Below are positions 6,951 to 61,758 of a stretch of 64,000 nucleotides of DNA, piece by piece. Within the stretch, counting starts at the first letter, position 1, and every line of letters starts with the position of its first letter. The position numbers were made by a program, and so were the translations under genes. The stretch spans positions 85,436,001 through 85,500,000 of the forward strand of contig NC_042999.1 in the NCBI RefSeq assembly GCF_006345805.1, written 5' to 3'. The notes beneath the pieces are model-generated. The model saw only the letters and a program-made list of their open reading frames with translations. It did no database searches and was not told where the DNA came from. Source of the stretch: Octopus sinensis. Lineage: Eukaryota.

Positions 6951-7351
6951 AGTGAAGAGTGGTCTTGGGATGCTGTTCTTGATAATGCACTGCCATACTT
7001 GCAGAAATATCTAGATCACTGTGTTAGTGTTAATGGCAATGACGAAAAAAAAAGGGTAAGTGGACTGGTGTGGGCTTCTTTTGTGTGACATGATTTTCCA
7101 CAGCACATCTCACATATGTGTATGTATATATGTGTGTGTGTATGTATGTATGTGTGTATGTTTGTGTGTTGTTATTTATATTGATTTCAGTTGAATATTT
7201 ATACTTAAGCAACAATTATTTTGTATTACTCTACCTGTATTTTGGATTGTTACTTTTACTGTATACGTTTTACTTATTTAATTGATTGTTTCTTTATAAT
7301 ATTCATCTCCCAATTATTGTCTTTTTCCCCCTTTTTTTTCTTTTTTGGAAG

Positions 7352-7983
7352 CTAATGAAGAAAAGGAAACTATGAAAAAAGATTGCAAAATACAAAAAGA
7401 AGGATTAAAGGATGGTCTAGACTCAAATAGTCTAGGAGATGCAAATTCTGAAAAGCAACTGCTAGAAGCCATAAATATCAAAGAAACATCAGTAAAATTA
7501 CAACCTGCTGCTGCAAATGAATTTGAAACTTCTGCTCCAAGCTTCAGTCAGCAGTCACAAGATGTTGAAAATTCAGTAGTCAGTTGTCAGTATGATGACA
7601 CCGAAGAAACTCTTAAAACTGTGGAACATGATATCAATTCTGATTCATCATTTGATTTCTTTGATTTAGCTACTAGTCCCAATGATTTCAAACCAACATT
7701 TGAATTTGTTCATCCAGCTGAAAATTTAAATAGGATAAAGAGAAGTGAAAAATCAGATAAAATTAATCATATTTCAGATGTATCTGAAAATGAAGAAGAA
7801 AGTACACAAGTTTCTTCACAAGAAGATATTACAAATGCTTTGGATTCAGCAATCAATAATACTGATACCATAGGAGCTGATGAACTGAAAACTCTGGTTT
7901 CACTTTTACTTTCAAAAAATGTTGAAATTCAAGAAGCAGCAATACTTGGGATTGTTAAATGTGCTGCATTTACAGACCATCAG
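7352..7983 (+). CDS. ARMC10: ARMC10-like exon 2 (acidic low-complexity linker plus start of ARM region)
   Basis: Polypyrimidine tract plus AG at 7350-7351; open frame to CAG|GTAAGA at 7984 (phase 0); ends ELKTLVSLLLSKNVEIQEAAILGIVKCAAFTDHQ (ARM-like). Confidence 0.88.
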
Positions 7984-8237
7984 GTAAGATGCACAAAAAT
8001 TTCTTAATAACTAATTGAATAGTTAGTTGTTTGAAGGGAATCTTATAGTAACAACAATTTCTTTAATAATAACAATATACTAGTGATGTGAAATCTATCC
8101 CTCTCGTGCTAACATGAAAAACTATATGTGGAAAATAAGTGCTAATACTTGCAAATAAACATTCTTTAATAGAAATAATAATTTTATGACGGTACTAGAA
8201 ATTCACTTTATTGAATTTTTTCTTTTTTCTTTACCAG

Positions 8238-22908: not shown

Positions 22909-23431
22909 TTATTTGTTTTGTTTATTATATTCAAGTTGAAGTTCTTGTAAATTTTGCTCCAACATTTCAACTTCATCAAATTTTTGGGCTTGTTTTGCTT
23001 GTTTAATATATCCACGAATTATTTCTATCTGCTGCAACATGGGATCATTTGTATTCTGTGAATAAGAAGAAATCTCAGATGGCTTCCAGCCTTTACCAAT
23101 GTTACCATTAGTTTCAGTTCTGGAAGCTTCCTCTTGAGATGGAGAATGATGCTGTCGATGTTGAGAAAAACTGCTTGTTGATGAATCAGAAGACTTTTGT
23201 TGCTCTTGAGCTAACATGGCTTCTTTTCGTTCTAGTGCAAATTTTTGTTGCATCTCCACAGTATGAGAATTTTTCATCTTTTCATATTCTTCTTGAGATG
23301 GAAGTTGTTGAATTCCACTCAAGTTCTCTTTCAAAAAGTTACTAGAAAAAGTACGTATTGCTCTTTGCAAGTATAGTTGTCTTAGAGGTGGAGATGTTTC
23401 ATTGTTTACACCCAGTGTCAAAATCTTTTTA
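22909..23431 (-). CDS. RBSN: Rabenosyn-5 coding exon 8 (terminal; Rab-binding helical hairpin)
   Basis: tttacag|T AAA AAG ATT (phase 2); SKKILTLG...GWKP...DPMLQQIEIIRGYIKQAKQAQKFDEVEMLEQNLQELQLEY*, matching the Rbsn Rab-binding motif. Confidence 0.93.
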
Positions 23432-23755
23432 CTGTAAAAATAAAAAGAAATAGTTTGTAATTTCAACAATAAATTTTATACAGTTTAATTCCAATAACAA
23501 GGGTTTCGATTATATACAATTATAAGAAATTAAAGTGTGTATGTCTCTGAACAGAAAATCATTTTATACATAGTAATATTCTAAATTTAAGACAATTACA
23601 TTTAGAATATTTTACAAGTCAAATGGGTAAGTAAAGAATAATAAGAGATCTTTATTGATGAGAACCTAACCCATTAGCATTTAAACTAACCATATCTGGT
23701 GTATGACCTGATTTGGCCTCTTACACGTGCTCTACAATTTCATTCTAAAAATAAA

Positions 23756-26700
23756 CATCATCATCATCATCATCATCATCATCGTTTAGCGTCCGTTTTC
23801 CATGCTAGCATGGGTTGGACGGTTCTACTGGGGTCTGTGAAGCCAGAAGGCTTCATCAGGCCCAGTCAAATCTGGCAGTGTTTCTACGGCTGGATGCCCT
23901 TCCTAACGCCAACCACTCCGTGAGTGTAGTGGGTGCTTTTTACGTGCCACCCGCACTGGTGCCAGACAGAGCTGGCAAACGGCCACGAACGGATGGTGCT
24001 TTTTATGTGCCACCGGCACGAGGGCCAGGCGAGGCTGGCAACGGACACGAAACGGGGCGGTGCTGGCAACGGTCGCGAAACGGAAAGTTCTCTTACATGC
24101 CACCGGCACTGGTAACACATCTGCAATTTCCATTGATCGATTTCCATTGATCGATTTCGATTCTGATCGTCACTTGCCTCAACGGGTCTTCACAAGCAGA
24201 GTTTTGACATGCCACCGGCACTGGTAGCACATCCGCAATTTCCATTGATCGATTTCGATTCTGATCCTCACTTGCCTCATCACGTCTTCACAAGTAGAGT
24301 TTTGTGTCCCAAGAAGGGAAGGTATGCATACGTAGGCTGGCTCCATCCTATGTAGAAGGCCACGGGTTATGGACTCACTTGTCCTGCCGGGTCTTCTCGC
24401 GCACAGCACACTTCCAGAGGTCTCGGTCTCTAGTCATTTCCTCAGTGAGACCTAAAGTTCGAAGGTCGTGCTTCACCACCTCGTCCCAGGTTTTCCTGGG
24501 TCTGCCTCTTCCACAGGTTCCCTCAACCGCTAGGGTGTGGCACTTTTTCACACAACTATCTTCATCCATTCTCGCCACATGACCATACCAGCGCAAACGT
24601 TTCTCTTGCACACCACAACTGATGCTTCTTAGGTCCAGCTTTTCTCTCAAGGTACTTACACTCTGCCGAGTGTGAGTACCGGCATTACACATCCATCGGA
24701 GCATACTGGCTTCATTTCTAGCGAGCTTACGCATATCCTCAGCAGTCACGGCCCATGTGTCACTGCCATGTAGCATGGCTGTTCGTACACACGCATCATA
24801 CAGTCTGCCTTTCACTCTGTGCGAGAGGCCTTTTGTCACCAGTAGAGGTAAGAGCTCTCTGAACTTTGCCCAAGCTATTCTTACTCTAGCAGTTACACTT
24901 TCAGCACACCCGCCCCCGCTGCTGACTTGGTCACCTAGGTAACGGAAACTATCAACTATTTCTAGTTTTTCTCCCTGGAAAGTGACGGAAGTTGGTCTCA
25001 GAGCATTTTCAGTGTTTATTGTTCCTGAGCATCTGCCACATACAAAAACCATCTTCCTAGTTAGCCTTCCTTTGACATTGCTGCATCTCTTATGTGTCCA
25101 TAGCTTACACTTGGTGCATCTTATAGAGTTTCTACCTACACCTTTTCTACAGATCGAGCAGGGCCATCTACCTGAAGGTGTTTGTGATTTGTCTACCTTC
25201 CTACTGATTACGACTTTGGTTTTAGCTAGATTGACTCTGAGGCCCTTCGATTCTAATCCTTGTTTCCACACCTGAAACTTCTCCTCCAGTTCTGATAGCG
25301 ACTCAGCAATTAGAGCAAGGTCATCAGCATAGAGGAGCTCCCAAGGGCATCCTGTCTTGAATTCCTCCGTTATTGCCTGGAGGACTATGATAAATAGGAG
25401 GGGGCTGAGTACTGAGCCTTGGTGGACTCCTACCTCTACCCGGAATTCTTCACTGTACACATTTCCAACCCTCACCCTACTAGCGGCGTCCCTGTACATG
25501 GCCCGCACAGCTCTCACTAACCATTCATCTATCCCTAGTTTCCTCATTGCCCACCAGATAAGGGATCGGGGGACCCTGTCGAAGGCTTTCTCCATGTCAA
25601 CAAAAGCCAGGTACAGGGGCTTATCTTTGGCTAGGTATTTCTCCTGCAGCTGCCTTACCAGGAATATAGCATCAGTAGTACTTTTCCCTGGCACAAACCC
25701 AAACTGCATCTCATCTAAACTAACTCTCTCTCTAATTAGTTGGGCTATGACCCTCTCCGTAACCTTCATCACCTGGTCCAACAGCTTGATACCTCTGTAG
25801 TTATTTGTATCTAGGGCATCACCTTTACCTTTGTAGCAGTTGACTATTATACTGCTACACCAGTCATTGGGTATGACCTCTTTGTGTATCACCTGATTAA
25901 CTATACGGGTGACTAGGCTATAGCCGACACTACCAGACATTTTGAGCATCTCTGCAGTGATTCCTGATGGGCCTGGGGCTTTCCCTGTCTTCATGCTTCT
26001 AATTGCCTTAGCTACCACGGAACTATCAACTCGGATAGCTGGTCCCTCTGTTGGGTCAACATTCGGCAGACTCTCTTTATCCCATTCATTTTCTTCATTC
26101 AGCAACCTTTCATAGTGGCATCTCCAAACCTCTCTCTTTGCATCTTCATTTAGCGCAAGTGAACCATCTTCCATGCGAACACACTTCTCTCCTACCACAT
26201 CACGATTCTCTCTCACACACTGTCTTGCAACACGAAACACCTCCAGTCTTTGGTCCTCACGGCGCAGAACATTGGCAAATTTTTTCTTATCTGCTTCCCC
26301 TCTGGCTAAATAAACCTGTCTCCTAGCTTCTCTTTTGGCAGTCTGATACAATCCCCTGCTACCCCCATTTTTCCAGACCTTCCAAGCCTGTCTCTTTTCT
26401 CTAATAGCCCTGTCTACAATATTGTTCCACCACCACGTTATTCTAGGTCGAGAGGGGACTTTGCACCAGCCACAGATCTGGTCAGTGGCTCTCAGCAGGT
26501 TGTCCCTTAGAAACGTCCAGCTGTCTTCTACCCCCTGTGATGCTCTATCCCCTTCTACTTCGTCAGAGGCTTCAAGTAATATGTCCCTAAATCTCTGTCC
26601 ATTTGCAGGATCTTTAAGCTTCCAGATCCTTCTTCTCCATATTTGTCGTCTTCTGGTTGTCCTCCTAGTCCTGATCCTAAAGTCACTAACTACCAGTCTA

Positions 26701-28015
26701 TGTTGTGGGGTACATTCTTCACCTGGGAAGGTTTTGGCATTTATAAGCAGCCATCTCTCCCTTTGCCTTGTAAGAATGTAGTCAATTTGGCTGGTATGTT
26801 GGCCCGATTGGTAAGTGACTAGGTGGCTGGTAGGTTTCCTGAAGTTAGTGTTGCAAATCATAAGATTATTTGCATCGCAGAACTCCAGCAGCCTGGTTCC
26901 CTCCTCGTTGCGGGAGCCATAGCCATAGCCTCCATGTACGCCATGGAAGCCCCCAGCATGTCGTCCAACGTGACCATTGAAGTCACCAGCCACAAAGATA
27001 AGGTCTCTGTCGTTCGTCAACGAGGTAGTCTGCAGTAGAGTGTCATAGAATCGGTCTTTCTGTCCATCGGGTAGCCCCGACTGAGGAGCATAGGCTGATA
27101 TAATGGTTGCTAAACTATGATGAAGCACTAATCTAATCTTAAGTATTCTGTCACATACTCTGATTACCTCAATTACTTTATCTACCCATTTCTCAGCGAT
27201 AAGTATACCCACGCCACCAACCCCGTCAGTGTTCCCTGCCCAGAAAATCTTGTACCTGCGTTCCTTGCCTGTGAGGAACCTAGCTGATCCTCCTCTCCAC
27301 CTTATTTCTTGCATGCAACATATATCCACACATCTCCGTTCAAGCATCTCGACTATCTCACCAGACCTACCTTTCAGAGTGCCAACGTTGAGGGTGCCAA
27401 CCCTGAGGGTGTGGGAGGCATGGGCTCTAGAGACCCTGGGACGGTGGACAGTAGCTTCGTGTACCTGAAAAGAAAGCTCGCATTTGGCAGAATTCATGTG
27501 CAAGAAATGAAGTAGTAAAGTAGCCTTCAGTACAACCTGCATAACGCTAGCCTTTCATATTTTGCACTGTATGAACATTACCTTACATAGGTCGAGACTA
27601 GGGGTAGGGAGGGGTAGGGATGGTGAGAACATTTGCAGTCTTCATGGGAAGCAACCCCGGAATGGCAGAGAATAGGAACTTCGGCATGCGTGGTGGGGGT
27701 GGGAGGTCGGGTGCACCGTGTCTGAGTAAAGAGGTTCTGTTAATCGTATGAGCTAGCAAATGGGTTTGTATGAATCGGGAGACAACACTAAACGAAAAAT
27801 TGAAAAATCAGAGTGGCTATGAACCTGTAGACAAGTCTAAACGAAAAAAAATGTTTGAGCTAGACAGGGTAATGAGGGAATACTGAAAGAATGAGGGACA
27901 ATACAATGAGATGGAAATTGAAGAATAGAGAAAGAATAAGAATAAGTGCAAGAAAGAAGGTAGTCGTAGCGAGGTTGGACGATTCACTTAACTTTTAGCC
28001 ATTCATGATCTGTGC
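23756..28015 (-). mobile_element. Apparently full-length RTE-clade LINE (~4.26 kb)
   Basis: (CAT)9 tail at 23756-23782, ~590-bp 3'UTR, intact ORF, ~470-bp pyrimidine-rich 5' leader; CpG-rich versus flanks. 5' boundary uncertain by ~10 bp. Confidence 0.88.
24375..27542 (-). CDS. RTE LINE polyprotein (APE endonuclease + reverse transcriptase + PHD-like finger), 1055 aa, uninterrupted
   Basis: EN motifs GTLNVGTL, CMQE, SAYAPQ, GDFNGHVG, SQIDYIL, QHRLV; RT motifs YRGIKL, QFGF, FVDMEKAFDRV, GVHQGSVLSP, YADD, FRYLG; RTE tail LRWYGHVARM, GRGRPRKTW. Confidence 0.97.
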   Translation of the reverse strand: MQVVLKATLLLHFLHMNSAKCELSFQVHEATVHRPRVSRAHASHTLRVGTLNVGTLKGRSGEIVEMLERRCVDICCMQEIRWRGGSARFLTGKERRYKIFWAGNTDGVGGVGILIAEKWVDKVIEVIRVCDRILKIRLVLHHSLATIISAYAPQSGLPDGQKDRFYDTLLQTTSLTNDRDLIFVAGDFNGHVGRHAGGFHGVHGGYGYGSRNEEGTRLLEFCDANNLMICNTNFRKPTSHLVTYQSGQHTSQIDYILTRQRERWLLINAKTFPGEECTPQHRLVVSDFRIRTRRTTRRRQIWRRRIWKLKDPANGQRFRDILLEASDEVEGDRASQGVEDSWTFLRDNLLRATDQICGWCKVPSRPRITWWWNNIVDRAIREKRQAWKVWKNGGSRGLYQTAKREARRQVYLARGEADKKKFANVLRREDQRLEVFRVARQCVRENRDVVGEKCVRMEDGSLALNEDAKREVWRCHYERLLNEENEWDKESLPNVDPTEGPAIRVDSSVVAKAIRSMKTGKAPGPSGITAEMLKMSGSVGYSLVTRIVNQVIHKEVIPNDWCSSIIVNCYKGKGDALDTNNYRGIKLLDQVMKVTERVIAQLIRERVSLDEMQFGFVPGKSTTDAIFLVRQLQEKYLAKDKPLYLAFVDMEKAFDRVPRSLIWWAMRKLGIDEWLVRAVRAMYRDAASRVRVGNVYSEEFRVEVGVHQGSVLSPLLFIIVLQAITEEFKTGCPWELLYADDLALIAESLSELEEKFQVWKQGLESKGLRVNLAKTKVVISRKVDKSQTPSGRWPCSICRKGVGRNSIRCTKCKLWTHKRCSNVKGRLTRKMVFVCGRCSGTINTENALRPTSVTFQGEKLEIVDSFRYLGDQVSSGGGCAESVTARVRIAWAKFRELLPLLVTKGLSHRVKGRLYDACVRTAMLHGSDTWAVTAEDMRKLARNEASMLRWMCNAGTHTRQSVSTLREKLDLRSISCGVQEKRLRWYGHVARMDEDSCVKKCHTLAVEGTCGRGRPRKTWDEVVKHDLRTLGLTEEMTRDRDLWKCAVREKTRQDK

Positions 28016-34530: not shown

Positions 34531-34947
34531 AGAAAGTGGACATGAAATGATGATGATGATGGTGATAGTGATATATATGTATATATCTGTTATGCACAAT
34601 GAAGGCTATATTAAATTAAAATAGCCACCTATGTATCATAATGTATATACATTGTTGATGTACATATCCTGAGATAATATCACTTATGGAAGAGCTATGT
34701 CAAAAACACAATAAATATTGAAGGGAGACAAAAACAAAAATGCCTCAGTAGTGGCCAGTGAGAATACCAGATGCATTTTGGCCTTTTCAATATGAACTTG
34801 CAGCCAACCTGGATGAGAATTTATCATTTTCAGTGGCCATACATACATATCAACATATTTACTTTAGATAAATGTAAATTTCTTTATGGTAAATAATTCC
34901 CAGGAAATATGAAATATGATGGATAGAGGATTTAAAATTTAACTCAC

Positions 34948-35088
34948 CAACTTCCTGAGGCTCCCAGAAAAAAGGATAAAGTCCAGGTATGAGCGCATTT
35001 GTACTTGATTGTTCTCTGTCATCAAAAGAATCTTCTTTTTCCCCAAGCATATCACCCAACAGTCGTTTTTTGGCCTTTTCAAATAAGC
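34948..35088 (-). CDS. RBSN: Rabenosyn-5 coding exon 2
   Basis: gtgttag|GC; GLFEKAKKRLL...FWEPQEV; G|GTGAGT donor; phase 1/1. Confidence 0.93.
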
Positions 35089-35357
35089 CTAACACAGAAT
35101 GAAAGAACTAGCATTAAAGTAAGTAAATATAATTATTTAATTAATGCTTGAATAGAGTACATTTCCATTGCAAAATTTCATAGTAAGATCAATTGATGGG
35201 GGCCACAGATGAAAGATCTTACCTATTTACTTTAAATTATCAAATATTCTTAATCACTTAAAACCCAAGAAATTATATATGATTCTTCTAGTTGCCAAAG
35301 ATGGACAAATAATATATGACAGTGTAAAAGATTTACTTCAAATATGAAGTACCTTAC

Positions 35358-35493
35358 CTTTGAGTTGCTGCGAAACAGCTTTCTCTTCAGTTGTGTGTGC
35401 ATCTTCAAAATGTGTTTGCAATTGTGTTACAGAAGAATAGTCTTTTAAACAGATGGGACAAATGAACCCTTCTCGAATATCAGTGCTTGTCAT
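35358..35493 (-). CDS. RBSN: Rabenosyn-5 coding exon 1 (C2H2 zinc finger)
   Basis: ATG at 35493; MTSTDIREGFICPICLKDY...LQTHFEDAH; G|GTAAGG donor; acceptor at 35506 implies an upstream non-coding exon. Total CDS 1470 nt = 489 aa. Confidence 0.95.
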
Positions 35494-37149
35494 CTTCAAA
35501 AATATCTAAATTAAGTAAAAAAAAAATATGTGCATATAAATCTGGCAGAACAAACGATATTAATTTTAAAGTCAAATTTTGTGCAACCCTGGATGAGAAT
35601 TTGCAACTTCCTTTTTCAGGTAGGTAAGTGCAGCCCACCCCAACCTTTGAGCTGGCTTGTGCTCATTCTCCTTTGTTATTATCATTAGGCTTTTTTGTAA
35701 CTGGATTTTCTACAGGGAGCATGCTCTTACTTACCCCAACCTCAGTTTCTAGACATGAGTGGTCCCGAGACCAAAGCTTCTACCATAATTTTTAAGAAAT
35801 CTGGTGGAAAACTAGCTCAGGAAGGCAGGAATGCTACTCTCTGAGACCCCTTTCAGAGCCCCACCACCATTATTTCTCTATACAATATTCCCTAAACAGG
35901 AAATTTTGACAGTCAAACAGTGTCTGTGTAGTTAACATTTTTGTGAATGTAACATTTTCATAGAACAGGTAAAAATCACTGTCTTCCACACATACAGGCT
36001 TGTCCTTTCAAGTGCTGGTACCACTTAAAAAGCACTCGTGTTGGTGCTGCATTGATGCACCTGTGCCAGTGCTGCATAGATGCACCCATACTGGTGGTAC
36101 GTAAAAACTACCCAGTATACTTTGTTAAGTGGTTTGAATTAAGAAGGGCATCAAGCCATAGAAATCATGCCACCACAGACAGCTGAAGTCTGGACAGATC
36201 CCTGCTAGCCAACTCCATGTTAAACAATCCAACCTATGTCAGCATGGAAAGCAGATGTTAAATGATGATGGTGAAGATGCTTATGATATCTTGATTCAGT
36301 AAATTGATTTAGCTAACAAAAATGGGTAAATGTGTATCAGATGACTGCAGATTGATACAGGGGATGAGCAAAGTACATTCCTGATTCAGCACCAGTAATT
36401 GGTTATGAGCTTTTACGAAAGTTACAGTAACAGATTTCTTGAAAATGCTATAAGAAATTAATAATTTAACTATCTTTTTGAAATGACAGAAAGCATGGAG
36501 TGAGAGAACAAAAAAGAAAAACATATGTATGATGAAATAAGATATGAGAGTGAGCAAATGTCTGAAGTTATGAAGAAAAGGAATAAGAATAGAGAAAAGG
36601 AGAGGGGGAAGAGTGGGGAAAAATTCAGTTAGAGTGAAGCTGACTAGGAGAAGGTCTTTGTAAATATAAGGCTGGGGCCATTGTAAATAAATATATATAT
36701 TGTAGCATACATGTATCTACATTTAAACAGACTCAAAGAAAATAAAAGGGAAGAACAGTAAAGGTAAAATTGTCAGAAGAGGAAGAAAAATTTAGGAGTG
36801 GTAGTAAGGTGAATTTGTTAGAAGGAAGAGAGATGGGAGATAAAGTTTCTGGTCAATAGGGGAACACAGTAGTTCTTAACAGTAAAACTATATGTATGCA
36901 TATTCACACACATGCACATATTTTCTCTGCATGCCTGTAGTATCTTATTGGTGTGCATGCATGCATACACACCTGTATATTCTCATGTGCAGAGAAGATG
37001 TAGGGAGATTAAGAAGTTAAGAAAAAAATATATAAAGGTAGTTTAAAAATTTGTTATAAATACATAGAAGAGCTACAAATGGAGGGGGGACAGAATAATC
37101 GGTGGGGTCGCACGCTATTATATATACTTTGAGAAAGTGTTACATAATC

Positions 37150-48309: not shown

Positions 48310-49745
48310 CATAAGTATGACTTTTCATGAATGCAACAATCATTTAAATGGACCTCTCGTAAACTGCTTTTTCAAAAATTGAGGTTTAAAAAAAAAAATT
48401 GCCATTTTTGATTGGACCAATATTTAAGTTATATAATTTCCATTATCCCATTGAAATTCAGAACACTGCGTTGGCAAAGTTATTAAACGTTTTTATTTTT
48501 AAAGGCACATTTTATCTTTATTGAGCTGTGAAATTCTTTTCTATGCCTAAAATATATTTGCTTTTTCTGCATCAGATGCACAGTTTCATCATCATCAAAT
48601 TATTTAATTGTAGTTTTATACATTCATTTCTTCTACAATCACAAACATACATTATAAAAATTATAAACATCTTTCTTTTCTTGTTAAAAATGAAGTAGCA
48701 GATAACTCGGTCAAAGACACTTAAATAACAACAATGCACATTTTTCATTCAACATAAAAATAAAGGCATGATTATTTATAGCTTTTTTACATTTTTTTTT
48801 TAAACTGGAGAATGTATTTTCAGGGGTTGGGGGAATATGCCCAAATATCTTTGCAAATGACAAATTTTATTTACAAAACTGTTGGATTGAAATTTGAATA
48901 ATATTAATTTAATCTTAGCATACCTATCTTTAAAAATTTCATATATATGGGATTTAGCTGAATATAGTGACACAGCTATTGAATATGAGAAGAGAAGAAA
49001 CAACATTAATATCAAGCAAATTATTACAAGAGAAACATATAAATTAGACTAATTTTTTAGTTTTATAATATTGTTAAATTAATTTAAATTCTTTTATGAA
49101 CATTTTTCTCAATGTAAAACCTATTAATTTTTTAACTGTAATTCATTGTACATATTTTATTCTTTATTTATCACTGTCTTACATCTATGGGTGGAATGGT
49201 TTTTTGCAAATTTGACATTTTCACAAATATCACAAAGCAAATATCTTCATAAACGTAAGCTTTAAAATATATGTCACGTTATTTCATATAAAAATAGCTC
49301 ATTGACAATAACACTGAATAGTGGAGGAAACTAATGTACGAACTGCATAGAAATAATCATTATCACAAATCACACATAACCAACACTCTCGTAATATCTG
49401 TTACATAACAACTTAAAATGGGACAATTTTGTATTTATCATTTCATTACAGTAAATCTGATTATCACTTCAGACAGTTTTTAAAATTAATACATATACAT
49501 TATTTTACAATAAAACAAAATACAATTCCCCAAATCACCACCATATAAAAAAATCTTGTGCTTTTAAACATCTCTTATTTTACAACAAAGTTCAAAACAT
49601 TCAACAAATTGAAATGACAAATAAATGTCAATGTTGACTGAAAGGAAGCCAATAAAGATGTTCAAACCTATTTCTTCTCAACTAATAATAATTTCATAAT
49701 AACATTATTCAAAAAATAATAATTAAAATGAATTATCATCAGTGA

Positions 49746-49945
49746 CTAAAACACACCACCAAAAAAATCTGTTATGCCTTCTCCATCATTCAAATTAAAC
49801 ATATAATCTTCCATATAGATAGGTGGTTCAAGGTGAGTAAGTGTAGAGTCAAGATTTTGGTCTTCAGTTTGCTGTAAAAGATTTATGTTGGCATCTGGGG
49901 ATATATCTTGTTCTTCAAGCAGTGCATTTTTCAACGAAACTTGTG
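49746..49945 (-). CDS. E2F3: E2F terminal exon (transactivation / pocket-protein-binding)
   Basis: tttaacag|CA (phase 1); ...EDYMFNLNDGEGITDFFGGVF*, matching the RB-binding Y..L...EGI.D.F motif. Confidence 0.92.
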
Positions 49946-52845
49946 CTGTTAAAACAAAAGTAATAACCATGAATATTTGTATGATAAAATGAATATATAT
50001 ATTATGTATGTATAAAAAATTTGTTTTGTTTTCATTTTAACATTTACTTTCCCATGTATGCATATGTCAGATGAGAGTTTATTGAGACTGGGTAGAATTT
50101 TCTATGGTCAGATACCTTACAAGTGAAATGATAATCTCCCATTCTAACACATATATTTGTTTGTTTCTCCATGCTAGTATGAATTAGATGTATATATTAT
50201 TGAGGTACTGTTTTACAACTAGATACCTTTCTTGTTACTAACCCATACCTGTTTTTCAAAAAAGGAGATCTCTTATTTCATGTCTTTGAAAGCATGAAGT
50301 GAGTGGACAATTTGTTGACAAGGAACAATAATACATGTAGTGGGTGACTTTTGTAGAACACAATTGTAAACATACACACATCCATGTATGCATATGATTA
50401 GCTTCTTTCACTTTCTATTTATGATATTCACTAACAAGGATTTGGTTGGCCCACCATGCAGTGTGGTTAAGAAATTTGTTTCCCAACAACATGGTTTCTG
50501 GTTCAGCCTCAGTGCATGACACCTTGGACAAGTGTCTTTTGCTATAGCCCCAGGCTGGCTAAAACCTTATGAATGGTTTTGATAGATGGAAATTTGAAGA
50601 AACTCATCATGTGTATTCTTGTCTGGACATTGCACAACAATTATGAGAGTTACCATCCATCATACAAGCACAACTGCTTCTAATTTTCCATGAAAACATG
50701 TCCAGTCATGGAGAAATGTTACCTTGCTTAAAAACAGGTAAGGGTTGGTGACAGGAAGGGCATTCAGCCATAGAAAATCTGCCTCAATGAACTTCATCTG
50801 ACCCATGCAAGCATGGAAAAGTGGATGTTAAAATGATGATATTGTATCATCATCATTGTTTATGTTAAGACTAACTTCTTTGAAATATTGTTTTTATTAA
50901 ATTATTTCTGATTAATTAATTTATCTATTTCTATTAACTGATTGAATTAAGAATTGAATAATATATTGCTGCTATTTTTAGATTTTAAAATTAGAATTTC
51001 CTATTTCAGTAATAATTATAAATTAACTGTAATAGAATATCATCTTCTAACATTGTAAAATTTATTTAATAAAAAATAAATTAATGCTTAATATTTTAAG
51101 CTCAGCAACAATTGGCAAGTAATTTAATAAGGTCATTTGGTATAAAACTTAAATAAGAGGTATTGAGTTATAATGTGAGAGAAAACAGACTAAACACTAC
51201 AACACCATTGACATGTACTGTAACAAATGCTAAAAAAAGTAACTAATATGACTTCTTGCAACAAATGAAATTCTCATAATAATTTGAATACATTGGGTAC
51301 AAATAGAATAGAATGAAGTTTGCTAACAATGGCCACATCTTATTAAGCATCACACGCTGAATTGCATGTAAAAACCAGTGGCAGATATTATCAAACCTCA
51401 ATTTCACATATCTGTATAAAAGCAAATTAAGGAATCGATAAAAGAGCCTCTACATAAAACATCCTCTTTTGAGAAATAAACTGCATGAAACATGGCTCGT
51501 CGTGATGTGGCCTGCACAACTATATAAAAATTCAAGGTAATTTTTTGTTGGCATGCCATTCAGAAAGTTCCACAGGCTGCAGTTCATGATTGCTCTACAT
51601 GGTCACTTATTTGCTGGAAATAACAGCCAAAACACACTCAAATCAAACCCCAACATGTTAAATGAAGTATATATTGGGCAATATAGTACTTCATATATAA
51701 TAATATTAAGATGGTCATAGCTGGTAGGTCTTTCATCATGGGACTGTGAGATCAGAGTTGGTTTGGAGTTAGACAACAAAACCATGCTAAATCTAAATAT
51801 ATACATATTACATCTTAGAGTCATGTTTGTCTTCAAACAAGTAACTCGATCTGAGACAATGTGTTGAAACAGAAACAATTAAACATTATGAAAGATTCTG
51901 TTTGACCATCTGAAAATGCACCAGCATTGTTGAGCTTGCTTGTTTCTTGATATGTCAAAAGCTTCCATTGCACAACTGCAATCTGGTTACTGACAATTCC
52001 ACCGCATCAGTGGATTTCTGAGACACTGTACAACATTCCATTATTATAAACTTCTTTCCCACAATGGTCACCCAACATGCTAGAAATAACAGCTACAAAC
52101 TTATCAAATTAGAGTAGATTGTTGTTATAACAATGACTTGTTAATAAAAATGCTTTTGTTTACAAAACATCACATTTCATCATCATTCTTCCTAGATCAA
52201 CCACTTTGTTAACTTCATGGACTGCATACTCCTCTTCCTCCTCACTTCAACAATAACAAATGGCAATATAATGTCTACCCACTACATCTTTTCCTCAATT
52301 CATTAATTCAATATGTACGCATTGCTAGATCAATGTAACATTTTCTCTCTATCTGTTTAATTGATAAATTGTTGAGTTATAAAGTATTACAATCAAGTTA
52401 AAAGGTTCCAAAATTGAAGTCATATAAAAACACACATCATCATCACCATCATTTAACATCTGTTTTCTATGCTGGTGAGCTAGAGGACTGCACCAAACTA
52501 CACTATCTGCTTTGAGAGGAATTCTATAGCTGGATGCCCTTCCTAACACCAACCACTTCACAAAATGTACTGAGTGCTTTTTAACATGGCACCATCACCA
52601 GCAAGGTCACCAAGCAACTTGCAAGACAAAGATACCTCAACTGAATAAGGAGTAGTATTGAAGGAGATGGCTTCATGCCAGGTGATGAGAAGTTAAAGTA
52701 TGATAGAGGAACAGGCATTTTGCTGTAGATAAGATACATGGCTACTCCAGCTGGAAAAGAAAGGCAGGAGAGAGAAGATAGTGATGCAGATGTGTCAGAG
52801 TGTACCCTCAAAGTACAGGGGAGGTGAAAAAATAAGAATACTTAC

Positions 52846-53008
52846 TTTTAAAGCTATCACAGGATGTAGAATCTTCTGATAATTGTTCTTCACTTATACT
52901 ACTACTACTATTATGACCCTCTGTTGCTGGTGTGTGTTTGACATCCTTTTTTACATCATCGGGACACAAATACACCTCAATGGCTTGACTGTTACTTTTT
53001 AACCAAAT
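52846..53008 (-). CDS. E2F3: E2F exon (end of marked box)
   Basis: IWLKSNSQAIEVYLCP; A|GTAAGT donor; first available AG acceptor is atgcag|ATT (5' edge uncertain, see findings). Confidence 0.8.
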
Positions 53009-54393
53009 CTGCATATTATTCAATAAAATACAAGTGGTTGTTTTAAAAAAAAGAAAACAAAAGGAAAGAGTGAAATGAGTAAAACAGTATAAAAAATCAC
53101 AATAAAAAGTCATTTACAATGTCCATAACTTGAAAAGTTTATTACATTTGGTATCATTAAAATGCAAAGCAAAAGTTTGAGATATTCATCATTATCATTT
53201 GACGTCCACTTTTTCATGCTTGTATGGATTAGATGGAATTTGTTGAAGCAGATTTTCTACGATCAGATGCTCTTCTTGTCACCATTGCTCACCTATTTCC
53301 AGGTAAGGTAATATTTCTCCATAGCCATACAAATTTCCCACAGAAGATTGAAAATAGACATCACTTGTATGACAGTGACAACCATGTGATGTTAGGGTAA
53401 GGGCACATACATAATGTGTGTGTAATCAAAGTAAGCAACAAGGATATCCAGGTGTTGCTTATTTTGATTTTAATCACCTTAATTTGTGTATATATACACA
53501 CACCACAAGCTTCTTCCAGTCTCTGTCTACTAAATCTATTCACATGGATTTTGGTCAGTCTGAAATTATAGAAGACATTTGCCCAAGGTGCTGTGCAGTA
53601 AGACTGAACCCAAGACCACATGGTTGAAAGCAAGCTTCTTAATCACACAGCTATGAACCATACCACCACCTATACCAAAATTATTGGTGTTCTGTTACCA
53701 TCATTATCTACATACATCATAAATGGACACATCACTATAATAAGGGGATGTTTCTCTGCACTTGTAATTTGTAAGCATGATGTTTTTGTTGTTTTTTTCC
53801 AATTTTGTTACTTTAGCAAGTTATTTGGATAAGTGCATGGTATTCCAATGACATGGACATTCAATGCATCTTCGTGTTACAATAATTGATGCTTGTAATA
53901 CTAACATTGAACATTTGAGCTTAATCTTAATAATCAGTGATTGTTTCTTGTCAAAATAGCATTCTCTTACAAACATTTTTCATGCTTTGTATTTCACAAT
54001 TACTTAACATTGTTGTTGAGCAAAAACGCTTTCCTCCGTAGCATACATTTTTTAAACATAGGTTTTCAAATGATTTCACAAACTGTTTCAATTTACATCA
54101 ATTAGTTTCACAGCTAAAAAGTGAATAATCATAGGTAGCTAGAAATTGATCAAAAATTTTTAATAGAAAATGTTTCTATAAATGCTGCTCCTTGTAAAAA
54201 CATTCTAGAAAGATTCTATAAAATTTCATGAGATTCTACATAGCTCTGTACCAATTCATTTTTGACTATGCAGTTAAGTCCTATACTATTGGATGTTGCC
54301 ATAGTCAAGCCTTTCTCAAGAACATTACTGATACAAAGAACATAAAATTAATACTGAAAGTAGAAAGGAAAGTAAAAAAAAATTAAAGCTCAC

Positions 54394-54508
54394 CTTTGAT
54401 ATATCAGGTAATTCTAAACGTGTTTCAGGAGGTGCTTTGACAGCCATAACTGTTTGATCATCTAATGATCTTATATTTCGTATATCATGATACGTTACAT
54501 ATGCATAT
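54394..54508 (-). CDS. E2F3: E2F exon (marked box)
   Basis: [38 protein letters not shown]; AAG|GTGAGC donor; non-AG 5' boundary after the U12 intron. Confidence 0.85.
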
Positions 54509-55581
54509 TTAAGATTGAATTAAAGAAATAATGAAATTCAAAGGGAAAAAAAAATTATGAAAACATTAATACAGATAGATAGGAAATAAAAAAAATATTA
54601 TGTAGGCCTGATTACACATTTAATGATGATACTAACTCCCTGCCACATTTTTACTCCAATCCCACACATTTTATTCAGTAAATTTGTTTCTACTGAATCT
54701 AACACTATGATGAAAAAAGAATTACATAGATGCAAACTATTTTAATTTTTCATTAATAAAGAGGAAGGAGGGATTTTTGAGAACTACTGATTTACACTAT
54801 AGTCCTAAGAAGGACTGACAATGTTTTATATTTGTGTGTGAGCATATGTGTGAGTACATGTTTATCTTTTTGGAAAATACTCAAAATGAAACCTTGAATA
54901 GAATACACACACATAAACACTTACATAACATTGTCTACTTCTCAGAGTTATACAAAGTAAATAGCAACATTACTTGTCTTTACTCTCAGTTATTTGATGT
55001 AGGTATATACAGTTGCGACCAAAATGTTCAGAACGGCATTGTTTTCGTAAGAAAAGTAGGTATAAGTTTTTATATTCTATAATTTTCACAGACAATAAAT
55101 ACGATTTTATTATCGTATTTATTATCTGTGAAAATTATAGAATATAAAACAACTTTGATAAAAACTTATACCTACTTTTCTGACGAAAACAATGCCGTTC
55201 TGAACATTTTGGCCGCAACTGTATATCAGTGTATATAACATAGTGACCTCCCTTGTATTGCGAAACTATATGAGCATCAGGTCCTCCACCTACTTCTTAT
55301 TTTCTCAACTAAAACTATTTTATAAGCAATGCACTTTCAAGTAGTTGAAGATTTCTAATACTGTAGATATCTAGAATAAACAGTACGAGAAAATTTGAGT
55401 GACAACAGACATTCCACAGAAATTATCATTATCATTTTAACATCTACTTTTCCGTTGTTGTTTCAGTGCCAATTTAGTATAAATGGATTAATCATTATGA
55501 CAACTACTATTGTAACCACTATATGATATTTTTTGAAGTAAAATACACAAAAGGGAACATTTTTTATTCATAAAAGGATAT
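54509..55581 (-). other. U12-type (minor spliceosome) intron, AT-AA (alternatively AT-AC ending at 54494)
   Basis: 5' end ATATCCTTTT is the U12 consensus; branch-like TTCTTTAAT at 54527-54519; no AG within ~100 nt upstream of the exon. Confidence 0.85.
55010..55221. mobile_element. Palindromic Tc1/mariner-type MITE with TA target duplication
   Basis: TA|CAGTTGCG...CGCAACTG|TA; the whole 212 bp folds on itself with a 6-nt loop and one ~14-nt bulge; CpGs retained. Confidence 0.85.
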
Positions 55582-55681
55582 TTTGATTTTTCTGGGTCTT
55601 CTGTAAGGATTTTCAGCTGTTTTGTACAGTGTTCTATTAATTCATCCATTTCATTTTCTTTAGCTTCATAAATAGCCATTT
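55582..55681 (-). CDS. E2F3: E2F exon (coiled-coil dimerisation)
   Basis: gttgacag|AA; EMAIYEAKENEMDELIEHCTKQLKILTEDPEKS; ends AA|ATATCC (phase 2). Confidence 0.9.
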
Positions 55682-56546
55682 CTGTCAACAATAAAATATT
55701 TAGAGTTTGCTTAAAATTAACAAAGAATGAAGATTACATTTATCAAGTTATGCAGATATGTTTCTAATATCATCGATTATGTTTAAATTTAGTTTCTACT
55801 GTCAAAAGGAAGAAAACCCTGGACAAAACTCAAAATATTTTTAGTAAGATGATCTATAATAATTTGTAGGGAAATTTGGGGATGGAGAATAGAAATCATT
55901 CAACCACTGTAGTGGTTGAATATATTAAGTCCACCATTTCGTCAATTGCACCAGCTTCCAAGCTTCACCATTAATGCAAACTGTTAACAGTTTTAAAGAG
56001 GACACCTCCTCAGCTACACTTTGGCATAAATAGTTTGAGATTTGGTTCAGTAGAAAAGTTACATCAAAATATCTGTGACCCCAAGGGGGGCAGTAAGGCA
56101 CCTATTCACCTTCAATTAACATAAACTTTTAAATTTTAAAATAAAAGTATACTTTTCTTAGGCTTAAATGATAGAAAAATGTATGAGAACTGTAAAGAGT
56201 GATAAATTAGAAGAACTGGCATTCATTGCTGCAATATTTTAAGTAAAAAGTTTCTTATTCTTTACTTTACTTGAAGTAATAGTTTGTCCTATATTTTTAC
56301 AGATGTATTAACTTGTCCTGTATTTTTTCAGGTTTATAATCTTAAGAATATTACTTTTCATGCTCACATTTTTCCATGTAATATTACTAATAAGTGAAAT
56401 TGTAAGCCAATTCCTTTTATATGGAAAAACATTTGGTTCAGACATATTAAAATTGAGTAATGAAAGCAATTTCAACAGTTTGACTAACATTTAATACTAG
56501 TTATTGATAAACAAAGGAGGAATCATTGTAAATGTTTTAAAAGTAC

Positions 56547-56620
56547 CTGAATGTAAATCCATTAATTTCGTAGTAAGCTGGAGTGGCACAGGATTAGCAG
56601 CTATTGATGATATACAACCT
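56547..56620 (-). CDS. E2F3: E2F short linker exon
   Basis: tttacag|A GGT; GCISSIAANPVPLQLTTKLMDLHS; G|GTACTT donor; phases 2/1 fit both neighbours. Confidence 0.8.
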
Positions 56621-57204
56621 CTGTAAATAAATAAATAAATATATCATTTAGAAAATTTGAAAGCAATTGATAAACAGAATCTGTAGAGAATTTAAGAAAA
56701 TGCCTGGCAACATTTAAACATCTCTTTATGTTCTGTCACGGTCAATTCTGCCTTTATTCTTCAACACCAGCCTGAGAATTTAAATGGTGAATGATACCAA
56801 ACAGGCTGAAATTAGCCATAGTGACCTATTCATATTTAAGTGAGAATTTCAATGCAAATCTCATTAGTACATTCATGAAAACACATGGCTTCACTATGTA
56901 AGTTATTGAATGAACTGTCCGACATTATTTTACTTGATATTTGAGCATTGTAAATTTGTGGAGACTTTTTCCCACTTCGATTTTATGAAAGGTTTCACTA
57001 TGGATAAAAACTGGATACCAGTATCATGTTGTCATGCAGCAAGTTTGAATTTGAAGTATTTTCAAAAGACAGAAAAATTCAAAACAAACGGCAAACATAA
57101 AAACCACATGTGTGATTATAAATAGGATTTTTTTTTCCCTCCTGAAAGTGAAACAATTCTAACAGTTCAGACAGCAGAGAAAAAAGCAATTTGTACCTAA
57201 ATCA

Positions 57205-58265
57205 TCATCATTATTTAGTATCTGCTTCCCATGCTGGCATAGGTCAGACAGTTTGACTGGAACTGGTAAGCCAGTGAGCTGTACCATATTCCAGTTTGAA
57301 TTTTGGTTTGGTTTCTACGGCTGGATGCCCTTCCTAACACCAACAACTCCAAGAGTGTAGTGGATGCCTCTTATATGTCACTGGTACGGGTATTTTATGT
57401 GTTACCAGCACTACCCACAACTCAATTTTACTTGGCTTGATGAGTCTTCTCAAGCACAGCAAATCGTCAACGATCTCTATCACTTGTCATTGCCTCTATG
57501 AGACCCAACATTCGAAGATCATGCTTCACTACCTCATGCCATATCTTCCTCTTCCACAGGTTCCCTCCTCAGTTAGAAAATGGCACTTCTCTATGTAGCT
57601 GTCCTCACCCATACACATCACATGACTATACCAGTGTAACCGTCTCTCTTGCACACTACACCTGATGCCTCTTATGTCCTATTTTTTTCACGAGATGCTT
57701 ACACTCTGTCATACATGCACACCAACATTGCACATCCAGTGAAGCATACTGGCTTCATATCTTTCAAGCCTAGCTTTATTTCTTTCATGTCTTCATATGT
57801 CCTCTGCAGCCACAGCTCACGTTTCACTGCAGTGTAGCATGGCTGTTCATACACAGGTATCATACAATCTGCCTTTCACTCTGAGGGAGAGACCCTTTGT
57901 TATCAACAAAGGTAGAAGCTCTCTGAATTTTGCCCTGTCTATTCTGATTCTAGCAGCTACGCTCTTGCAGCATCTCACCTCCACTGCTGACTTGGTTACC
58001 TAGATAATGACAGCTATCAACTACTTGTAGGTATTCCCCTTGGCATTTGATGGAGTCTATTTTCAGTATGTTTCTAATGCTTATTGTACCTGTACATCTG
58101 CCAAACACAAAGGCTATTTTCCCTGCTAACCTTCCTCTAATATTGCTTGCACCTCTTATGTGTCCATAGCTTGCACTGAGGACGCCTTATGGAGCTTCTA
58201 CCAACACCTTTTCTACATATTGAGCTGGGCCATCTACTGGAAGGGATTCATGATTTGTCTACTTT
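57205..58265 (-). mobile_element. Older, 5'-truncated RTE copy (same family as 23756-28015)
   Basis: (ATG)n tail near 57205; collinear similarity to the intact ORF from the RWPSSICRKGVG zinc-finger segment to the 3'UTR; frameshifted. Confidence 0.85.
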
Positions 58266-59685
58266 GAATTTGATGGTTTCAGAAAAGATGAAACAAGATT
58301 TTTTCAAATTTAACCCAAATAGTAGGAACTAAAATTATCAGCTTTAAAATGAAAGATTTTATTCATAATGTTGATTTAATCCAGTACATCTCAGACTTAC
58401 TTTAACTACTGTTCTCTTTCTTTTAATAACACTTTTTAATGCCTCAACCCTTGGATATTTCAATATCCACATTTTTTCATGTACATACAAATAATATTAA
58501 GCCAGAGGATGTATCACCTGCTTGGTGTAGGTGATACATACTTAGCACATGGCTTTGACTAAGCTCAGGTACATAGTCTTGATGCTTCATATACACTCCT
58601 GTAGCTAGCAAGTAAAATTTATCTTTATATCTCAATTTATAGTTGTTGGTATTGAGATTGTGGCTAACAAACTGTTTATTTTATATTGCATTTAATTTTT
58701 TAGTTAATATTTAAATAAGATATGAAGACTTCCATCCCCAACCTTCTACAGTACTTGTATAATATGAAAAGCAATTATGTCTTAGTTGCAAGTAAAAACA
58801 AAGAAGCTGTGTAGTCAAAAGAAAACATAGAATGACCAACATTTAATGGCCATTTCCATGCTGAGAAGTCAAAAGACTACACCAAACTCCAATGTCTGTT
58901 TTGGCATAGTTTCTACAGCTTGATGCCCTTCCTAAAGTCAACCACTTTACAGAGTGTGCTGGGTGCTTTTAACATGACACTAGCAGCAGAAGTCACCAAA
59001 TAATTTACATGACAAGATGCCCCAAGGAGAGAAGGAATAGGATTGGGGAAGGTGGCTCTGTACCAGATGAGAGGTTAGAGTATGACAAGAGGGACAGAAA
59101 TTGGTGTCCTGCAAAAAGGAGATACAAGGCTTCCTCAGTAGAAGAGAGAAGATGGTGAGGATGTGACAGGGAGTACACGAAGTGTATATAAGTGAAACGG
59201 GACCATAGATTGGATAGGGTGAATGAGTGGGTCAGTTCACAGGACTGTGAAAGTAAGTGGGAGGTGGAAAGGAGGGAATATAGTGAGTAGACAGAAATAG
59301 GAGGGGTTGTTTGGGAGATGTATTGTGGAGAGTAAGAAAAATTCATTACAAAACATTTAATTTTGAAAAATTCAAAAGTAATTTTTTATAATTAAGTTGT
59401 AATATTTTTATCAACTTACTGAATGGTGAGAATCATTAAAATACTTCTTTGTAATAATTTCACAGATATAAGAATATGCAAAGGTGAAAATGGGAAGAAT
59501 TTCAAGAAATAAGCATAACATTGAATACTTTGATCAATAAGGATATGTGTCAATAAAGTACCAGTATTCACCTTATCACTACAGTCTTAAAGTATACTTA
59601 CCAATGGTACAGGAACACAAGTTTTATGGTCAATATTTAGAAAAGTGGCAAAAACAGAAAAAAATGAAACTTCACAAAGACTTAC

Positions 59686-59810
59686 TTCCATTGAATATGA
59701 TTTTTAGACTTTTTTGATATAAGATTGATTCCTTCCAATACATTTGTTATATCATATATTCTTCGTTTCTGAACTTCTAAAGATTCTGCAGCTTTATTTA
59801 AATCCACAAC
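59686..59810 (-). CDS. E2F3: E2F exon (winged-helix DNA-binding domain, C-terminal half)
   Basis: ttttcag|GTT; [41 protein letters not shown]; AA|GTAAGT donor. Confidence 0.97.
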
Positions 59811-59899
59811 CTGAAAATGAAAACACATTTTATTTTGTATATTATCTTTTTATCCATCGAGAACTTGGTATAAAAATATTTTAAACGAACGAAACAGAG

Positions 59900-60054
59900 C
59901 TGTGGCTGTTTGGTAAGAAGTTTCCTTCCCAACCACATGGTTCTTAGTTCAGTCCCACTGCATGGCACTATGGGCAAGTGTCTTCTACTATAGCTGCAAG
60001 CCAGCCAAAACCTTGTGAGTAGATTTGGTAGGCAGAAACTGAAAGGAAGCTCAC

Positions 60055-60085
<31 letters not shown>

Positions 60086-60290
60086 TTATGTTTATGTGTC
60101 TTTGTATCTGTGTTTGTCCCCTCATCATCATTTGACAACCAATGTTGGTGTGTTTACACCCCTGTAACTTAGAGGTTTGGCAAAAATAAAGTGATAGAAT
60201 AAGTACTAGGCTTACAAAGAATAACTAAAATCCTTCAAGGTGATGCTCCAGCATGGCCGCAGCCAAATGACTGGAACGAGTAAAAGAGTA
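59900..60290 (+). mobile_element. tRNA-derived SINE (major family), plus orientation
   Basis: Head tgtggctgtttgg...gttcagtccc; ends in (gtaaaaga)n immediately beside an E2F donor site. Confidence 0.75.
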
Positions 60291-60316
60291 AGAGTAAACA
60301 ATAAATGTGAACTTAC

Positions 60317-60408
60317 GCCATCTGGTGCATTTCTGAGCAAGCCAACAAACTTCTTCGTTAATAAGCCCAAGGATGTGTCATATCTTGTTTTTTCACCAGG
60401 GGATCGTA
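60317..60408 (-). CDS. E2F3: E2F exon (DNA-binding domain, N-terminal half)
   Basis: ttctag|TA; [31 protein letters not shown]; GGC|GTAAGT donor. Confidence 0.97.
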
Positions 60409-61384
60409 CTAGAATACAAAGCAAGTAATGAAATCTACCAATTTTAGTAAAGCAAAGTCTAAATTGTATTAATCATACATAAGTACACAAATAACGGAGT
60501 TAAAAAGTTAAAACAAAAAAGCTAGAATTTTAAAAATCACTTATTTCAATGCACAATGTCCACTTCCTAACTAAAACTGAATGTATCTTTGCATATCCAT
60601 GTACAGTTTTAGAAAGAATCACTCACATTCTTATATCCACTTTCTGTTTACCCACCTGACTAAAGCTTTCTTTAATTCAGAAAATACAAAATGAAGCTAT
60701 TCTAAAATAACTCACTTAGGCACAGTACTACTAAGAAATAACAGCTTTTGCGTGTTTTCAAATGGTTTAAAATGACTATTACAATGCAATGGGTTCACTT
60801 CCTATACACTCTCAGATCAAGCCATATGCTAAGTAAATACAATTCTTATATATGGTTTGAGTTCAGTCCCAATGCATGGCACTTGTGCAAGTGTCTTCTA
60901 CTATAGCTCTGAGCTGATCAAAGCTCTGTGAGTAGATTTGGGAAACAGAAACTGAAAGAAGCCTGCAGTGCATATGTGTGTCTCCTTGTGGTTGTTGTAG
61001 GCAGTGTCATTCATTTCTAATATTTTGTGAAAACATTCTGTCTATGGAGAAATATAATCTTCTTAGGAAACAGGTGAGAATTGGCAACACGAATGTTGTC
61101 TGGCCATAGAAAATTTGTCTCAATAAACAGCATCCTACCCATGCAAGAATGGAAATATGGATGTTAAAATGATGAGATGATTAAGAAATTCGTCTTGCAA
61201 TCATGGTTCATCAGCAGGGTCAAAGTGGTTGTCTTTATTGGGAATGGGGTACACTACTGTACATTTCCAGAAACCAGAGTAGATATCCAGAAATAGAGGT
61301 TTAAAAACTTTAGCCACCATAGCATCTCCTGAATGACAGTAAGCACACTATCAGAACTAGAACATGTGCACTTGTACTGCTATG

Positions 61385-61390
<6 letters not shown>

Positions 61391-61435
<45 letters not shown>
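61391..61435. repeat. (TA)n microsatellite
   Basis: Direct reading; another at 62004-62051. Confidence 0.95.
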
Positions 61436-61441
<6 letters not shown>

Positions 61442-61652
61442 AATTTTTAAGACTATGACTTGTGTTTTTTATGTGGCACAGTACCAGTGTTTTTTACGTG
61501 ACACTATAACCCACACTAATGTTTTTTACAAGGGCACCAGAACACACACCAATGCTTTTTACATGCCACCTTATTTATATTGGAAAATATAAAAGATAGA
61601 TAATACATTACTTGTTTAACAGTCAAAAGAGAATAAGCTATTTTGTCAATAC

Positions 61653-61758
61653 CTTTTGGACTACAATCTGGCAAAGCCCGTGTTTTACGGCCGCGTTTTG
61701 GAGTTCGAAGATCTTCCGTAGTTATAATACTCATTTCTAGCTCTAATTTCCGTTTAGC
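61653..61758 (-). CDS. E2F3: E2F exon (cyclin A-binding motif/NLS); most 5' exon found, start exon probably beyond the window
   Basis: cttttcag|GCT; AKRKLELE...TPKRGRK...SPK; G|GTATTG donor. AKRKLEL and [13 protein letters not shown] indicate the E2F1/2/3 activator class; the symbol is the closest paralogue, not proven orthology. Confidence 0.9.

Follow-up and report, generated by a model that had tools for sequence, protein, structure and literature searches.

Minor introns are enriched in the E2F family (PMC6865273). The minor spliceosome sets its 3' splice site mainly by how far it lies from the branch point, 11–13 nt being optimal. U12-type introns with non-canonical termini function, often at lower efficiency, and membership of the class is not decided by the terminal dinucleotides (PMC3584512). 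AT-AN pairs are competent for splicing, with three AT-AA introns known in human and four in mouse, and the intron of MSH3 is AT-AA in human and AT-AC in mouse (PMC1557818). In a survey that included Octopus sinensis, AT-AA was the commonest non-canonical type of minor intron in animals and plants (PMC10639083), and the AT-AN introns form an 'A-type' class that depends on CENATAC and shows elevated basal retention (PMC8280824). Here, we describe an E2F3-like gene of O. sinensis in a 64-kb stretch of genomic DNA (the window, by which we mean the whole stretch analyzed), in which intron 5 combines an intact U12-type donor and a U12-like branch site with the termini AT-AA. It is very likely that intron 5 is a U12-type intron of the AT-AA subtype that descends from an ancient E2F AT-AC intron and is still spliced at 55582/54508.

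The gene was detected on the minus strand by motif scans and tblastn, and the locus belongs to O. sinensis chromosome CM016861.1 (GCA_006345805.1; 100% identity across 15,255 nt). RefSeq E2F3 proteins of O. bimaculoides were found with a 300-aa query, and those of O. sinensis and O. vulgaris via the protein cluster list. The eight exons in the window (Table 1), when joined, encode residues 92–415 of RefSeq XP_029634391.1 with 0 differences, and six of the seven introns between them are GT-AG, intron 5 alone being AT-AA. The protein is of the E2F1-6 type, as its homologues carry PF02319 (the winged-helix E2F/DP DNA-binding domain) together with PF16421. It has a CC-MB dimerisation domain (Pfam, 100.3 bits) and matches PDB 2AZE (E2F1) with E = 3.9e-18, the YAYVT segment aligning within the crystallised CM domain, and a pocket-protein-binding motif is present at the C-terminus (DYMFNLNDGEGITDFF). 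As a separate observation on the exon structure, intron 4 of the window (GT-AG) splits the 74-nt exon 56547-56620 (minus strand; GCISSIAANPVPLQLTTKLMDLHS) of cephalopod E2F3 from the coiled-coil exon; the human E2F1 counterparts of these two exons form a single exon, which would make intron 4 of the cephalopods an extra one.

The surroundings of the gene can be described briefly. On the downstream side of E2F3, and in the same orientation, lies a Rabenosyn-5-like gene (open reading frame 22909-23469, minus strand; Pfam Rbsn, E = 6e-16). The G+C peak of 0.46–0.49 at 24–28 kb is due to an intact 1055-aa open reading frame of a non-LTR retrotransposon (24375-27542, minus strand), which combines an AP-endonuclease, a weak PHD-like finger and a reverse transcriptase (E = 1e-31). 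A degenerate, similar-looking element, judged by eye from translations of open reading frames, lies in intron 3 of E2F3 (about 57300-58200, minus strand). On the plus strand, an acidic, serine-rich open frame of 220 aa at 7345-8007 had no Pfam match and may be an exon of another gene. An Rfam scan of the whole window gave no match.

Table 1. Features of the E2F3-like locus (positions in the window) and the corresponding junctions in other genomes; a slash marks the exon–intron boundary.
Feature	Position	Strand	Basis or remarks
E2F3-like gene, part in the window	49745..61758	-	Spliced gene model; first exon(s) past the window end
E2F3-like exons, first four in the window	61758-61653, 60408-60317, 59810-59686, 56620-56547	-	Gene model
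E2F3-like exons, last four	55681-55582, 54508-54394, 53008-52846, 49945-49745 (stop)	-	Gene model
Exon D, coiled-coil part of the CC-MB domain	55582..55681	-	Ends EDPEKS + AA, phase 2; translation identical to XP_029634391.1
Intron 5, AT-AA termini, 1073 nt	54509..55581	-	Gene model and Octopus orthologues
U12-type 5' splice site ATATCCTTT	55573..55581	-	Motif match; perfect match to the AT-AC-class consensus; found at this exon end in every orthologue with the intron
Branch-point sequence ATTTCTTTAAT	54519..54529	-	Top-scoring site in the last 60 nt; branch A 54520 or 54521, 11–12 nt from the 3' end
3' terminal dinucleotide AA of intron 5	54509..54510	-	Sequence; the base corresponding to 54509 is C in every outgroup as well as in Argonauta and cuttlefish
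Exon E, start of the marked box	54394..54508	-	A TAT GCA TAT GTA ACG at its 5' end
In-frame AC that opens the Thr codon of YAYVT	54494..54495	-	26 nt from the branch A
Palindromic MITE-like insertion inside intron 5, about 212–222 nt	55005..55226	.	Sequence comparison
Argonauta hians junction			Donor TCAAA/ATATCCTTTA; 3' end TTTTCCTTAATtctgtcttAC/ATATGCT
Acanthosepion pharaonis (cuttlefish) junction			Donor TCAAA/ATATCCTTTT; 3' end TATCTTTAACtcactcgtAC/ATATGCT
Mizuhopecten (scallop) junction			Donor AAAAA/ATATCCTTTT; 3' end CTTCCTTAACcagattAC/ATTAGCT
Lingula junction			Donor TCTAG/ATATCCTTGG; 3' end CCTCCTTAATtgcgcAC/GTTAGCA
Xenopus laevis E2F3 junction			Donor CAGAG/ATATCCTTTT; 3' end TCTCCTTAACgtaacactAC/ATTAGCT
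Strongylocentrotus purpuratus junction			Donor GCTAG/ATATCCTTTC; 3' end TTGTCCTTAACtccctccatcAC/ATATGCT
Patella vulgata			Intron absent at the E2F U12 position

Exon D ends with GAA GAC CCA GAA AAA TCA AA at 55582, and intron 5 opens with ATATCCTTTT (55581-55572), RTATCCTT beginning at the first intron base. At the other end, the intron reads cattATTTCTTTAATtcaatcttAA/A TAT GCA TAT GTA ACG TAT CAT GAT, with the slash at 54509/54508, and contains the branch site TCTTTAAT, which resembles TCCTTAAC and has its branch A 11 nt from the end of the intron. The two departures from TCCTTAAC are both C-to-T; with GUAAGGA as the pairing region of the U12 snRNA, both changes would retain G.U pairs. The terminal pair is neither AT-AC nor GT-AG, and a U2-type 3' signal, that is, an AG with a polypyrimidine tract at the junction, is absent as well: the final 99 nt of the intron contain no AG (the nearest upstream AG is at 54609), and neither do the first 37 nt of exon E, whose first AG comes 38 nt into the exon. 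The preliminary description of this DNA had reported a perfect U12 donor, a branch-like site near the end, and no usable AG, and all three proved exact to the base on the minus strand. It had also stated that the AA junction restores the reading frame into YAYVT, and this holds, as joining 55582 to 54508 restores EKSK/YAYVT and the spliced model is XP_029634391.1. It is the sole junction to do so: in-frame acceptors within 60 nt either lead to stop codons, if upstream of 54520, or remove part of YAYVT, if downstream.

Some care is needed in reading these signals. Since exon D ends in AAA, the intron starts with A and ends with AA, and exon E starts with A, an mRNA leaves the boundaries ambiguous by up to 3 nt, and the label 'AT-AA' rests on the rule that U12 donors are cleaved immediately before RTATCC. 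In the 64-kb window there are two copies of the 9-mer RTATCCTTT against 2.1 expected from shuffles, so that the motif by itself is no rarer than chance. TCYTTAAY occurs 19 times in 128 kb (both strands), and the chance of finding a motif of this type in the correct 7-nt positional window is about 0.001. The significance of the signals therefore lies in the placement of the donor exactly at the exon end, in the spacing of the branch site, and in the orthologous AT-AC introns of six other genomes. As all testable U12 features except the 3' dinucleotide are present, we place intron 5 in the documented AT-AN subclass.

For this orthology, the genomic loci of seven further E2F3-like genes were compared, with the junctions located by tblastn (Table 1). 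Among cephalopods, the junction comparison covered three Octopus species, Argonauta and the cuttlefish, and a protein search with the C-terminal half of E2F3 found no further cephalopods. In six genomes from four phyla, an AT-AC intron occupies exactly this position; its phase is 2 in every case, a single base separates it from the (L/Y)AYVT codons, and a TCCTTAAY or TCTTTAAC branch site lies 8–13 nt upstream of the 3' end in these six orthologues. The vertebrate E2F U12 AT-AC intron just before LAYVT, which the preliminary description had cited as a point to be verified, was thereby seen directly in Xenopus laevis E2F3, with its counterpart in five other genomes. Within Octopus, O. sinensis, O. 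bimaculoides (GCA_001194135.2), and O. vulgaris (GCA_951406725.2) share the final 25 nt of the intron without a difference (attatttctttaattcaatcttAA); relative to the window, the O. vulgaris locus has 99.4% identity, and the O. bimaculoides locus about 87–95% in aligned blocks and 92–93% inside intron 5. The branch A lies 11 nt from the end of the intron in Octopus as well as in Argonauta and cuttlefish, and a base-by-base comparison of the Octopus and Argonauta 3' ends places a C-to-A change at the final intron base. Outside Octopus, there is transcript evidence for the orthologous junction: a Logan contig of 1638 nt from run SRR27666071 is intronless, encodes the full protein, groups with the cuttlefish sequence, and reads GTCAAA/ATATGCTTACGTCACG across the site. 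The Octopus protein cluster has a single Logan member, a 74-aa C-terminal fragment. In Patella vulgata, the U12 intron of E2F3 has been lost precisely (locus position about 5715), leaving the continuous coding sequence AAACAGGCATATGTAACG, and the intron is retained in scallop, Lingula, and the cephalopods.

The rarity of AT-AA introns is the sole point in favour of regarding base 54509 as an assembly error in what is really an ordinary AT-AC intron. The preliminary description had allowed for such a C, and this reading can be dismissed with near certainty, because independent assemblies of three Octopus species agree on this A (GCA_006345805.1, GCA_001194135.2, GCA_951406725.2). A-to-I editing of the terminal A was rejected in turn, as it could not restore AC and could only mimic AG, which would be another non-canonical pair. 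Given the AA in three Octopus species and the AT-AC at the same position and phase in the other genomes, the simplest history suggested by the sequences is that intron 5 is an ancient bilaterian E2F U12 intron in which a C-to-A substitution altered the last base in an Octopus ancestor. In this simplest history, the change would date after the split from Argonauta and before the split between O. bimaculoides and the O. vulgaris/O. sinensis lineage. The preliminary description had already proposed an ancient U12 intron with a mutated 3' end, which agrees with the AC of Argonauta and cuttlefish and the AA of the three Octopus species, and its statement that AT-AA termini are rare variants is borne out by the literature (PMC1557818, PMC10639083).

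The following mechanism can be proposed. The U11/U12 di-snRNP would still recognise the donor ATATCCTTT, which is intact, and the branch site ATTTCTTTAAT. The second step would still take place at a distance of 11 nt from the branch A, although the base before the cut is now an A (CTTAA/A), giving the normal EKSK-YAYVT protein. Cleavage at the unchanged spot would be expected because the minor spliceosome picks the 3' site mainly by branch-point distance and tolerates any last base after an intron that starts with A. The efficiency of splicing may be a little lower with AA than with AC. The RefSeq models are consistent with the 55582/54508 junction, but they are predictions. Besides the boundary ambiguity noted above, two observations speak against our reading of intron 5: all O. 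vulgaris models end within the intron, which could mean abundant intron retention and not only a limit of the pipeline, and the branch site departs from the consensus at two positions.

The preliminary description had drawn attention to a competing in-frame acceptor, the AC at 54495-54494. The loss of the original AC could let the minor spliceosome also use this downstream AC, perhaps via a new CTTAA, and thereby produce a regulated E2F3 isoform without YAYVT. This AC is indeed in frame and is the first one past the branch-like motif, its use would delete YAYVT and give EKSK-YHDIR, and the C-to-A change itself converted CTTAC into CTTAA, 15 nt before the AC; moreover, U12 3' splice-site selection is reportedly error-prone (PMC3584512). 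However, its status as a special rival acceptor did not stand. A Thr codon provides an AC in every orthologue (GTT ACT, GTC ACT, GTA ACT, GTC ACG, GTA ACG), including those with normal AC 3' ends, and the competing AC is therefore not an Octopus novelty but predates the mutation. It is 26 nt away from the conserved branch A, versus an optimum of 11–13 nt, and the second branch-like motif (tcaaTCTTAAa), which overlaps the AA site and had been put forward as its partner, pairs poorly with U12, with a score of 7 versus 18 for the main site in an ad hoc calculation by hand.

Use of the downstream AC would also cost the CC-MB domain its most conserved residues. A36, Y37, V38, and T39 would be removed, of which T39 is invariant and the others are at least 90% conserved in a 42-sequence alignment; xAY(V/I/L)T is present in 219 of 256 retrieved homologues, and the Pfam E2F_CC-MB score falls from 100.3 bits with YAYVT to 80.3 bits without it, a loss of 20 bits. 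None of the 10 Octopus protein cluster members, among them six RefSeq isoforms from two species, lacks YAYVT, and the combination that would characterize a pair of alternative acceptors, a second acceptor with an adequate branch site, adequate spacing, and an annotated second product, was not found at this locus. An AlphaFold2 prediction of the 94-aa CC-MB segment as a monomer, of a domain that folds with DP, gave pLDDT values of 61–70 near YAYVT and an unconvincing helical call. Altogether, we regard a regulated YAYVT-less isoform as very unlikely, though the AC may see cryptic use at a low level.

The annotation of the gene gives a further view on intron 5. The AT-AA junction is the one annotated by RefSeq for each of the three isoforms of O. 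sinensis and of O. bimaculoides, whereas the three O. vulgaris models (CAI9719623-5) all run on past the donor and terminate at EKSKYPFMNKKCSLLCILLQKISYSGYNSSCHND*. In O. vulgaris, the gene model that follows (637 aa, locus 34756-36720) contains a weak E2F_CC-MB match fused to FYVE and Rbsn domains, and the orphaned C-terminal half of O. vulgaris E2F3 has apparently been merged into the Rabenosyn-5 model. In an older O. bimaculoides UniProt model, a cryptic GT located 21 nt inside the intron is used and exon E is skipped, and the A. pharaonis model lacks this region. The expectation that GT-AG gene predictors would mis-annotate the intron was thus correct for O. vulgaris and for the old O. bimaculoides model, but not for RefSeq, which already has the correct junction. 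Stand-alone 'E2F CC-MB' models of 170–231 aa that start near LAYVT exist in Sinanodonta, Mizuhopecten, and Pinctada, and these bivalve half-models suggest that the canonical AT-AC E2F intron also commonly splits gene models.

The truncated O. vulgaris models can also be taken literally. If the AA end slows removal of the intron, much of the E2F3 pre-mRNA could retain intron 5, with a stop after 30 intron codons (YPFMNKKCSLLCILLQKISYSGYNSSCHND*), and this would result either in degradation of the transcript or in a shortened protein that lacks the marked box and the tail that binds pocket proteins. All three O. vulgaris models stop exactly in this retained-intron frame, basal retention is higher in A-type minor introns (PMC8280824), and less efficient splicing is frequent with non-canonical termini (PMC3584512). 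However, a pipeline that refuses AT-AA junctions explains the O. vulgaris models equally well, and the next gene model takes up the C-terminal half. The junction must also be functional, given that the AA state is fixed in all three species, with conservation of the full-length protein. We consider such a throttle on E2F3 expression possible but unlikely; rate-limiting expression, like the second isoform, had been raised in the preliminary description, and both are speculative. We likewise hold as unlikely the proposition that the fixed C-to-A change measurably weakens or diversifies the splicing of the E2F3 minor intron, be it by more retention or NMD or by some use of the downstream AC; if this were true, octopuses would have a dial on a core cell-cycle regulator that is specific to their lineage and depends on the minor spliceosome.

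Intron 5 also contains a near-perfect palindrome with 69-nt arms of 97% complementarity and an additional inner pair of 38-nt arms. It represents the 212 nt by which the O. sinensis intron exceeds that of O. bimaculoides, where it is absent, and it has 95% identity in O. vulgaris; no further copies were found in the window or in the compared loci. The palindrome resembles a MITE or hairpin insertion specific to one lineage, and its RNA would form a long duplex that is a possible ADAR substrate.

The practical value of these findings for annotation is larger than their biological value, which is modest. A single base would account for the truncated O. vulgaris E2F3, for its fusion with Rabenosyn-5, and for the skipped exon in the first O. 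bimaculoides model, and pipelines limited to GT-AG, GC-AG, and AT-AC will repeat such errors. On the biological side, the locus offers a clean and datable switch from AT-AC to AT-AA in an ancient, conserved minor intron of a cell-cycle regulator, and the octopus intron lends support to the notion that distance, and not the last base, guides the choice of the 3' site by the minor spliceosome. In the literature searched, we found no published description of the octopus E2F3 AT-AA intron; as the junction is already annotated by RefSeq, the intron cannot be called undiscovered.

In comparison with known systems, intron 5 is closest to the conserved E2F AT-AC U12 intron of the vertebrate E2F1-6 class, with which it shares the gene family, the codon position, phase 2, the donor ATATCCTT, and a TCCTTAA-like branch site 8–13 nt from the 3' end. 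It differs from this intron in its final base, which is A in Octopus and not C, and in its branch site, which is TCTTTAAT, as in cuttlefish (TCTTTAAC), versus the TCCTTAAY of the E2F AT-AC introns. With the AT-AA minor introns of human RASGRP4 and MSH3 (Sheth et al., 2006; de Wolf et al., 2021; Larue and Roy, 2023), it has in common a U12 donor and branch site together with a terminal AA, although gene and lineage are different. The switch between AT-AC and AT-AA among orthologues that is known from human and mouse MSH3 has its counterpart here between Octopus on the one side and Argonauta and cuttlefish on the other.
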